Part shown: in pieces, positions 30,301-31,475 of the stretch
How the letters are laid out: every line of letters begins with the position of its first letter
Position numbering within the stretch: the first letter of the stretch is position 1
Assembly (NCBI GenBank): GCA_002269645.1
Contig: NIVC01003099.1
Coordinates: 1-64,000 of the forward strand
DNA from: Macrostomum lignano
Lineage: Eukaryota
DNA length: 64,000 nt
Direction of reading: 5' to 3'
Program-made: the position numbers and the translations under genes
The notes under the pieces: model-generated
Seen by the model: only the letters and a program-made list of their open reading frames with translations
Told to the model about the DNA's origin: nothing
Databases searched by the model: none

Positions 30301-31475
30301 ATAGATAGATAGATAGATAGATAGATAGATAGATAGATAGATAGATAGATAGATAGATAGATAGATAGATAGATAGATAGATAGATAGATAGATAGACAG
30401 ATAGATAGATAGATAGATAGATAGATAGATAGATAGATAGATAGATAGATAGATAGATAGATAGATAGATAGATAGATAGATAGATAGATAGATAGATAG
30501 ATAGATAGATAGATAGATAGATAGATAGATAGATAGATAGATAGATAGATAGATAGATAGATAGATAGATAGATAGATAGATAGATAGATAGATAGATAG
30601 ATAGATAGATAGATAGAAAGAAAGATAGATAGATTGACAGGTTCTCACCTGGTCCGCATACACGGGACTCTCGGGCTCATAGTAGCCATCAGGTGTGACC
30701 CTGTATCCGTCATGCGACCAATACGAATAGTCAAACGCGAAGGAATTCTTTTTACCACTGGTGCTGGTTATGGTTGTCTGGTTGCCTTTCATCTGTATGA
30801 CCATTTTGCTGTTGTGACTCATTTCTCGGTCATCGTGCAGACGCCAAAGCAGCAAATATTGTGTAAAGTTAAGGCAAATGGTAAAAAATTGCGATATTTA
30901 TGGATAGAATTTATTGTCGAAACCCTTTTTTGATTTTTTAGGTCAGACTTTTGAATAACTAACAGACTAAATTTACCAGTTTCTATATATATATACATGT
31001 ATATACGAGTAGTTTTCAGGGAACAAATGCAAGACGGCATATTCAGTAATTATGTCTCGTGTTACGAATAATGTTAATTGCTTTTTCTATAAATTATTTG
31101 AAATCTGCCGTGTCTATGTAGCCGTTTGTTGTTTTATATGCTTCTGTGCAATCATCCATATATGTTATAATTATTACACTATGAGATTACACAATTAATT
31201 GTAATTATGCAGATAATTATTAAGTTAGAAAATCACGCTAATTAGTTTCAAAGTCAGCATAATATATTAGCCCCATTTTTATAATGCGCTAATAGTCTCG
31301 AATATATGTCTCTAAATTTATATTTGATATCTCAAAATTTTAACCTTGTAAATTGGAACTTGGTAGTCACTTCCCAAATAGGTGTAGTTAATAAGCTGTT
31401 TTAGGTCTCGATCGAATTATTTAAAAAGGATATGAATGGCCTCACTCGAACTGCTACTTTAATATTCTCAGCCAT
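21358..31475 (-). CDS. KIF28: Kinesin-3 family motor, KIF28/KLP-6-like (motor, FHA, stalk/C2-like region, C-terminal CaaX), ~1000 aa
   Basis: Exons 31475-31434, 30834-30649, 30239-30025, 29950-29613, 29052-28919, 28828-28758, 26580-26088, 25702-25374, 24582-24428, 23689-23267, 22655-22398, 22212-22102, 22011-21955, 21546-21358. Motifs [31 protein letters not shown] (P-loop), NATSSRAH (switch I), LVDLAGSER (switch II), [35 protein letters not shown], and FHA (HLWNLNAD...INGK...[11 protein letters not shown]). Needs +1 G at 30117-30119 and at 26112-26114. Intron 1 is AT-AC. Confidence 0.92.
21710..21935. repeat. Degenerate short-period repeat (CAACTACT/CAACCTACT), kinesin intron 13
   Basis: Direct reading. 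Confidence 0.85.
22795..23238. repeat. 42-bp G-rich minisatellite GGCCTGGATCTGGGGGTTGGTTAATGGGGTGGGGGTTGCGGA, kinesin intron 10
   Basis: Direct reading. Confidence 0.95.
23740..24370. repeat. 21-bp minisatellite CCCAGTGTCTTGATGTTCTCT, kinesin intron 9
   Basis: Direct reading. Confidence 0.95.
24715..25317. repeat. ~16-bp minisatellite GCCCCTTGGTGCT(AAA/GGC), kinesin intron 8
   Basis: Direct reading; reverse complement of array at 32997-33382. Confidence 0.95.
25732..26083. repeat. (GACA)n microsatellite filling kinesin intron 7
   Basis: Direct reading. Confidence 0.98.
26605..27790. repeat. Minisatellite with 23-29 bp monomers (AAACTTGGCGCCATCTCTGAC core) and a 294-bp higher-order period, kinesin intron 6
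   Basis: Identical ORFs start at 26964, 27258, 27552. Confidence 0.95.
28390..28690. repeat. ~32-bp minisatellite AAAACATGACCTTGAGTTGGGGAATCCCACCC, kinesin intron 6
   Basis: Direct reading. Confidence 0.9.
29080..29570. repeat. Degenerate ~30-bp repeat (GAGATTAGATCATAG core), kinesin intron 4
   Basis: Recurrent core motif. Confidence 0.8.
30255..30635. repeat. (GATA)n microsatellite filling kinesin intron 2
   Basis: Direct reading. Confidence 0.98.
30835..31433 (-). other. Putative U12-type (minor spliceosome) AT-AC intron, kinesin intron 1 (599 nt)
   Basis: 5' end ATATCCTTT directly after the RVRPF codons; branch-site-like TGCCTTAAC at 30876-30868; 3' end CAC|GAT restores RVRPFDDRE in frame. 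Confidence 0.75.

Follow-up and report, generated by a model that had tools for sequence, protein, structure and literature searches.

The 64,000-nucleotide (nt) stretch analyzed in this study (contig NIVC01003099.1 of Macrostomum lignano, positions 1 to 64,000; hereafter the window) carries on its minus strand a kinesin-3 gene whose first intron (intron 1) appears to belong to the U12-type AT-AC class. Motif scans and tblastn identified the kinesin-3 motor of this gene, with its P-loop, switch motif and LGGN, and traced the gene to approximately 22.3 kb. The motor is followed by an FHA region and by a tail of the KIF1B type, and Pfam matches were obtained for the Kinesin, FHA and KIF1B domains. 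The best database matches are proteins named KIF28P or kinesin-related protein 1 (62–68% identity over the motor). Six further introns were found in the motor region, all of them GT-AG, which leaves intron 1 as the sole exception. Intron 2 (window positions 30251–30634) consists almost wholly of a (CTAT)n microsatellite with 96 copies of the unit.

Coding exon 1 of this KIF28-like gene occupies positions 31434–31475 (minus strand), extending from the start codon ATG at 31475–31473 to the last base of codon 14 (TTC, F) at 31434. It encodes 14 residues of the motor beta-1 strand, 13 of which are the same as in the orthologues. Intron 1 follows at 30835–31433 (minus strand; 599 nt, 29% GC), with the termini AT (31433–31432) and AC (30836–30835). 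Its putative 5′ splice site, ATATCCTTT at 31425–31433 (minus strand; first intron base 31433), agrees with the U12-type consensus RTATCCTTT at 9/9 positions. Near the opposite end lies a predicted branch-point sequence, TTGCCTTAAC (30868–30877, minus strand), in which the branch adenosine may be 30870 or 30869. The core of this sequence matches the branch consensus TTCCTTRAY at 7/7 positions and, as CCTTAAC, is written with the same letters in the orthologous introns of Biomphalaria, Lamellibrachia and Pinctada (see below). The terminal AC (30835–30836, minus strand) forms part of CAC (30837–30835), and the predicted productive 3′ splice site CAC/GAT (slashes mark exon-intron boundaries or splice junctions) yields RVRPF/DDRE. 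Exon 2 (30649–30834, minus strand) opens with GAT GAC CGA GAA ATG, ends with ...SPVYADQ and closes at CAG/GTGAGA (30649/30648). Read on the minus strand (30500–31800), the sequence across the junction is ...ccaaaATGGCTGAGAATATTAAAGTAGCAGTTCGAGTGAGGCCATTC/ATATCCTTTTTAAAT.... A first-pass annotation of the window had placed a U12-type AT-AC intron at 30835–31433; these coordinates proved to be exact, and its statements about the sequence were verified.

Reading on past exon 1 adds 10 residues before an in-frame TAA (31403–31401), and neither GT nor GC occurs between 31434 and this stop, which bears out the earlier claim that exon 1 is followed by no usable GT. The only GTs within exon 1 (31457, 31451 and 31445) all fall within the conserved KVAVRV codons. 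On the acceptor side, the frame of exon 2 stays open upstream as far as a TAA at 30900–30898 (21 codons before GAT), and the 3′ region of intron 1 does not form a strong pyrimidine tract. The 66 nt upstream of 30834 contain no AG whatsoever, in agreement with the earlier statement that this part lacks an in-frame AG acceptor.

The junction was then assessed at the protein level against a panel of the 120 best database matches, of which 100 carry an RVRPF-type motif. When 31434 is joined to 30834, the resulting protein aligns to the orthologues without gaps. Exactly two residues separate RPF from RE in 100/100 motif-bearing homologues, so that the predicted RVRPFDDRE has the RPF-x-x-RE spacing, as had been proposed by comparison with RVRPFNxRE. 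In-frame donor/acceptor pairs were enumerated in full, for canonical termini as well as for the known non-canonical ones, and this revealed no in-frame GT-AG or GC-AG pair that preserves RVRPF. Only the U12-type AT-AC reading preserves the conserved kinesin N-terminus.

It is extremely improbable that the major spliceosome removes the intron, be it as a member of the U2-type AT-AC class or by pairing the donor GTGAGG at 31445 with an AG within exon 2. GTGAGG is a fair U2 donor and, joined to the in-frame CAG/ATG at 30793/30792, makes up the best in-frame GT-AG pair, but the product would lose 18 residues that are conserved in all homologues. Moreover, the 5′ site ATATCCTTT is not of the ATAAGT-like U2 form, exon 2 is preceded by neither an AG nor a strong pyrimidine tract, and the orthologous introns described below are U12-type.

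The chance expectation of both signals was calculated. RTATCCTTT occurs once in the window (both strands considered), and this single copy is located at the end of exon 1. In shuffled sequences 1.33 copies are expected per window, so one copy is in itself at chance level; the odds of its being placed exactly at the conserved exon end are ~1e-5. Only 0.5% of the AC sites in the window are preceded by CCTTAAC at a distance of 8–40 nt. Since the exact placement of the first signal has such low odds and the second is this rare near AC, the occurrence of a 5′ site and a branch site in the correct order around a conserved coding junction is no coincidence. Other RTATCCTY matches in the window were considered as donors and rejected, as they sit in minisatellites or within introns and none is located at an exon end. 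A second ATATCCTT within the kinesin gene (24621–24628, minus strand) is intronic, approximately 45 nt upstream of an exon starting near 24577, and is not a donor.

Genomic loci of orthologues were fetched and the exon 1/exon 2 boundary was mapped, at both ends in five species and at the 5′ end only in one. In the coral Desmophyllum pertusum, an intron of 1014 nt starts with ATATCCTTTGAA (ATATCCTTT motif), contains the branch site TTTCCTTAAT and ends in AC/AAT at a branch-to-3′ distance of 10 nt. The corresponding intron of the bivalve Pinctada imbricata (5144 nt) starts with ATATCCTTTTTG (ATATCCTTT motif), and its branch site ACCTTAAC lies 11 nt from AC/AAT. The annelid Lamellibrachia satsuma (956 nt; 5′ ATATCCTTTGAT, ATATCCTTT motif; branch site CCCTTAAC; 10 nt; AC/AAT) and the priapulid Priapulus caudatus (471 nt; 5′ ATATCCTTTTTT, ATATCCTTT motif; branch site TTCCTTAGT; 13 nt; AC/AAT) show the same arrangement. 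The intron of the gastropod Biomphalaria glabrata, only 110 nt long, is of the GT-AG subtype (5′ GTATCCTTTGGC, GTATCCTTT motif; branch site TCCTTAAC; 11 nt; AG/AAT). All five mapped introns are in phase 0 and are located immediately after RVRPF. The first-pass annotation had suggested looking at the type of the intron at this position in KIF28 orthologues; it is U12-type at the identical phase-0 position in all five species.

A kinesin gene of the hemichordate Saccoglossus reads RVRPF/ATATCCTTTTTT, with the same 5′ site, while the 3′ end of its intron lies beyond the fetched locus. Counting Saccoglossus, six other animals therefore carry the U12-type 5′ motif at the identical codon boundary. 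The two kinesin-3 genes of Saccoglossus are arranged head to head, and the RVRPF/ATATCCTTTTTT exon (locus L004, 4305–4334, minus strand) is placed within a called gene of 910 residues, a model that may be merged or mis-started. In the intron of Lamellibrachia, the 3′ module ttgtttctgcccttaaccaaccccac is a perfect tandem duplicate (locus L002, ~4040–4127), so that one branch site lies at 54 nt and another at 10 nt.

The intron is missing from some relatives. No intron is present at the RVRPF boundary in the hookworm Ancylostoma ceylanicum (residues 1–44 are colinear), which fits its loss in the nematodes, a group largely without minor splicing (PMC3584512). Copies that are intronless at this boundary were also identified on two ENA contigs. 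A KIF28-like paralogue of Orbicella has no intron after RVRPF; its GT intron sits 9 nt downstream of that boundary (RVRPFNSR/GTAAGT; locus L003, 5089–5127) and may have arisen independently, or else through conversion and shift of the original one.

We regard the comparative evidence, drawn from genomic sequence, as decisive for the U12-type reading. Since a U12-type intron is found at the same boundary in a coral and in bilaterians, it predates the cnidarian-bilaterian split, and the copy in the window descends from it.

Intron 1 of the KIF28-like gene is thus probably an ancient U12-type AT-AC intron removed by the minor spliceosome. The same U12-type AT-AC reading had been advanced in the first-pass annotation, and it is now supported by the signals, by the lack of a canonical alternative and by the orthologous U12-type introns. 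According to this model, U11 would pair with ATATCCTTT at 31433–31425 and U12 with TTGCCTTAAC at 30877–30868, and a productive second step would join 31434 to 30834 (CAC/GAT). Two parts of the model are ones that we infer, namely (i) a working minor spliceosome in this genome and (ii) the role of the distal AC as the functional 3′ site.

Several observations weigh against this interpretation. The distance from the branch adenosine (30869) to the in-frame AC is 34 nt, compared to 10–13 nt in the five orthologues. The first-pass annotation had given 33 nt; the long distance stands, and the recount (from 30869 to the last intron base) differs by counting convention. Such spacing is atypical, being beyond the 8–30 nt of the "good" branch-point sequences of SpliceRack, though within the 8–38 nt filter of this database (PMC1557818) and within the branch scan range of intronIC (-55 to -5) (PMC7367187). 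Two nearer ACs (at 6 and 8 nt) and an in-frame AA and AT (at 10 and 13 nt) are possible competitors. Exon 2 opens with D (GAT, 30834–30832), at a position occupied by N in 98/100 homologues and by D in 0/100; GAT and AAT differ by a single transition. The frame of the host gene is interrupted by a 1-nt slip in exon 3, so that the frame arguments rest on indel-bearing sequence. The loci compared for intron 1 are those of a cnidarian, molluscs, an annelid, a priapulid, a hemichordate and a nematode, with no flatworm copy among them, and the Macrostomum contig included in the comparison stops short of the kinesin N-terminus. Finally, an Rfam scan of the 64-kb window gave no match to minor small nuclear RNAs (snRNAs) or to any other Rfam family, although none would be expected in a sequence of this size.

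Site enumeration revealed a cluster of nearer possible 3′ ends at 30855–30864 (minus strand). As stated in the first-pass annotation, the two nearer ACs are both out of frame: that at 6 nt from the branch adenosine would cause a frameshift, and that at 8 nt would lead to a stop after 13 codons. The in-frame AA (10 nt) and AT (13 nt), which would insert YLLLWRLH and LLLWRLH, respectively, had not been mentioned there. It is therefore conceivable, if unlikely, that intron 1 is U12-type but ends at another 3′ junction (AA or AT in frame, or the AC at 8 nt out of frame), with the 34-nt AC minor or unused. U12-type introns have an optimum branch-to-3′ distance of 11–13 nt, and selection of their 3′ site is prone to error (PMC3584512). 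Among the non-canonical termini of animal minor introns, AT-AA and AT-AT are the most frequent (PMC10639083, PMC1635337). The 10–13 nt found in the orthologues and the 21 open codons upstream of GAT point in the same direction. However, chance alone can readily leave 21 codons open, and an insertion between RPF and x-x-RE is found in 0/100 homologues. The inserted peptide would be hydrophobic and would adjoin the beta-1 strand. The product of the 8-nt AC would be truncated although the remaining gene is well conserved.

On this evidence, the functional protein would come from the 31434–30834 junction, with competing products possible. It is doubtful, but worth stating tentatively, that the minor spliceosome may productively use a 3′ site 34 nt away, past the distance rule of vertebrates and plants, or that intron 1 may act as a switch in which the 8-nt AC gives a truncated mRNA and the distal AC the functional kinesin. 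A decayed CTTTGGC would mark the origin of the arrangement. This motif (30843–30849, minus strand) stands at a distance of 9 nt from the end of the intron, at which the orthologues carry their branch site. Three transitions separate it from CCTTAAC, and it may represent the ancestral branch site in a decayed state; motifs of the CTTTGGC type at 9–13 nt have a background frequency of 0.25%, for a pattern defined post hoc. With its 34-nt spacing, intron 1 is a natural case in which the distance rule of U12-type 3′ sites can be put to the test.

Other explanations of the 3′ region were considered. Its origin as a diverged tandem duplicate of a "branch site-AC/AAT" module, of the kind evident in Lamellibrachia, was rejected as not significant, since 34% of background sites score equally, given CAC/RAT. 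No hairpin that might shorten the effective distance was predicted in the branch-to-3′ spacer, whose folding is no better than that of shuffled sequences (z = -0.02). As a repeat, the 26-nt spacer was also negative, with a single occurrence in the window.

The frame slip in exon 3 coincides with a G-run at 30117–30119 (minus strand). It amounts to 1 nt, with SYSIIGYG and ANKGIVP encoded in successive frames, while the orthologues read GYGANKGIVP. An analogous slip, a 1-base deficit in a G-run, was found in an exon of the LRWD1-like gene of the window (14278–14280, plus strand), where INCSARPG and QAVTCGDNEG are in different frames and the orthologues have ARPGLNAVICGDNEG. Since two independent genes share this homopolymer defect, both slips are most likely assembly errors, and the genes are unlikely to be pseudogenes. 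The presence of indel errors calls for caution with frame arguments that extend over few bases.

It is accordingly very unlikely that the kinesin gene is a recently inactivated pseudogene, in which the 30117–30119 frameshift would be real, the long spacing would be a product of decay and productive splicing of intron 1 would no longer be needed. The 1-nt slip, the atypical 34-nt spacing and the D in place of a near-invariant N would fit such a history. Nevertheless, more than 900 conserved codons, including parts that are 87–94% identical to Macrostomum, contain no further stops or shifts. The U12-type signals are perfectly preserved, and the identical loss of 1 nt from a G-run in the unrelated LRWD1-like gene points to the assembly as the source of the slip.

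The predicted splicing depends on a minor spliceosome, and comparisons of the encoded proteins are informative about the lineage. The LRWD1-like gene shares 51–54% identity with Schistosoma proteins and 43% with a monogenean protein, as against at most ~37% (~30% over full-length alignments) with all other matches. For the kinesin, the tail shares 56% identity with a protein of Macrostomum lignano, and parts of the motor show 87–94% identity to the same Macrostomum locus. These comparisons assign the window to the flatworms, probably to a free-living relative of Macrostomum. Schistosomes possess U11, U12, U4atac and U6atac (PMC2770079) as well as minor introns (PMC10639083), which makes a working minor spliceosome plausible in the lineage studied here. 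The perfect preservation of a U12-type 5′ site and branch site speaks for retention of minor splicing in a free-living flatworm lineage.

Besides the kinesin, the window contains (i) a NAB-like gene with an NCD2 domain (4500–8285, plus strand), (ii) the LRWD1-like gene, with leucine-rich repeats (LRR) and WD repeats (8900–15200, plus strand), (iii) a pirin gene with both cupin halves (45394–48570, minus strand) and (iv) a PAN-domain exon (19687–20106, minus strand). Nearly every intron and intergenic stretch carries minisatellites with a period of 16–64 nt, among them a 28-nt unit, CTCAGTTGCTGGGCCAGCCTCCCAGATC, found at 7023–7475, 14476–15040 and 18673–19638. An open frame of 467 codons (33976–35376, minus strand) has hydrophobic segments and matches no Pfam family; it might encode a membrane protein specific to the lineage. 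The region 56235–57851 (plus strand) contains three overlapping long open frames that also lack Pfam matches and have a transposon-like composition; it is possibly a transposon-derived gene, which may likewise have been broken by frame slips.

The first-pass annotation had predicted that standard gene finders would miss exon 1. This was seen in two of the orthologues. In P. imbricata, the called gene starts 5.1 kb downstream of exon 1 (locus L005, 4860–4889), and the deposited protein begins with translated intron (YRIRLTLTPGY/NEREK...). In D. pertusum, exon 1 (locus L010, 8915–8944) lies 1.06 kb upstream of a model that begins at a Met within exon 2. The Macrostomum model (P0041) likewise begins within exon 2, with RERTRGSK. 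Within the panel, 20/120 homologues are without an RVRPF-type motif and most of these (about 15) begin inside exon 2, a count for which not all species were checked. The 14-codon exon 1 is thus lost by gene callers in the KIF28-like family, and the gene of the window would fare likewise.

No paper linking KIF28 to U12-type or minor introns was found in the literature searched, and Kif28 is absent from the mouse minor-intron gene lists in the text of the supplement, which is possibly incomplete (PMC6717393). The conservation of this intron in the KIF28 family, in which a U12-type position has been kept from corals to bilaterians, may therefore be undescribed, although it is not surprising. The practical value of the finding lies mainly in annotation, and the general picture of U12-type introns is unchanged.

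In comparison with known systems, intron 1 is an ordinary case of the U12-type AT-AC class with one curiosity, its long branch-to-3′ spacing. It shares with this class the 5′ site ATATCCTTT, a TTCCTTRAY-like branch site, AT-AC ends and the lack of an AG or strong pyrimidine tract, and, as is typical, it stands alone among GT-AG introns at a deeply conserved position. Unlike other members, it has an in-frame 3′ site 34 nt from the branch adenosine (compared to ~10–15 nt), at which splicing is predicted. Intron 1 of the KIF28-like orthologues has the same phase-0 position, 5′ motif and CCTTAAC-type branch site; it and intron 1 of the window differ in spacing and in the first codon of exon 2, which are 34 nt and GAT (D) here, and 10–13 nt and AAT (N) there. 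With U12-type AT-AA and AT-AT introns it has in common the candidate in-frame AA and AT at the canonical 10 and 13 nt, but use of these sites would insert 7–8 residues found in no homologue. AT-AC termini also occur in U2-type AT-AC introns, in which a pyrimidine tract accompanies a U2-like 5′ site, whereas the intron of the window has U12-type 5′ and branch sites.

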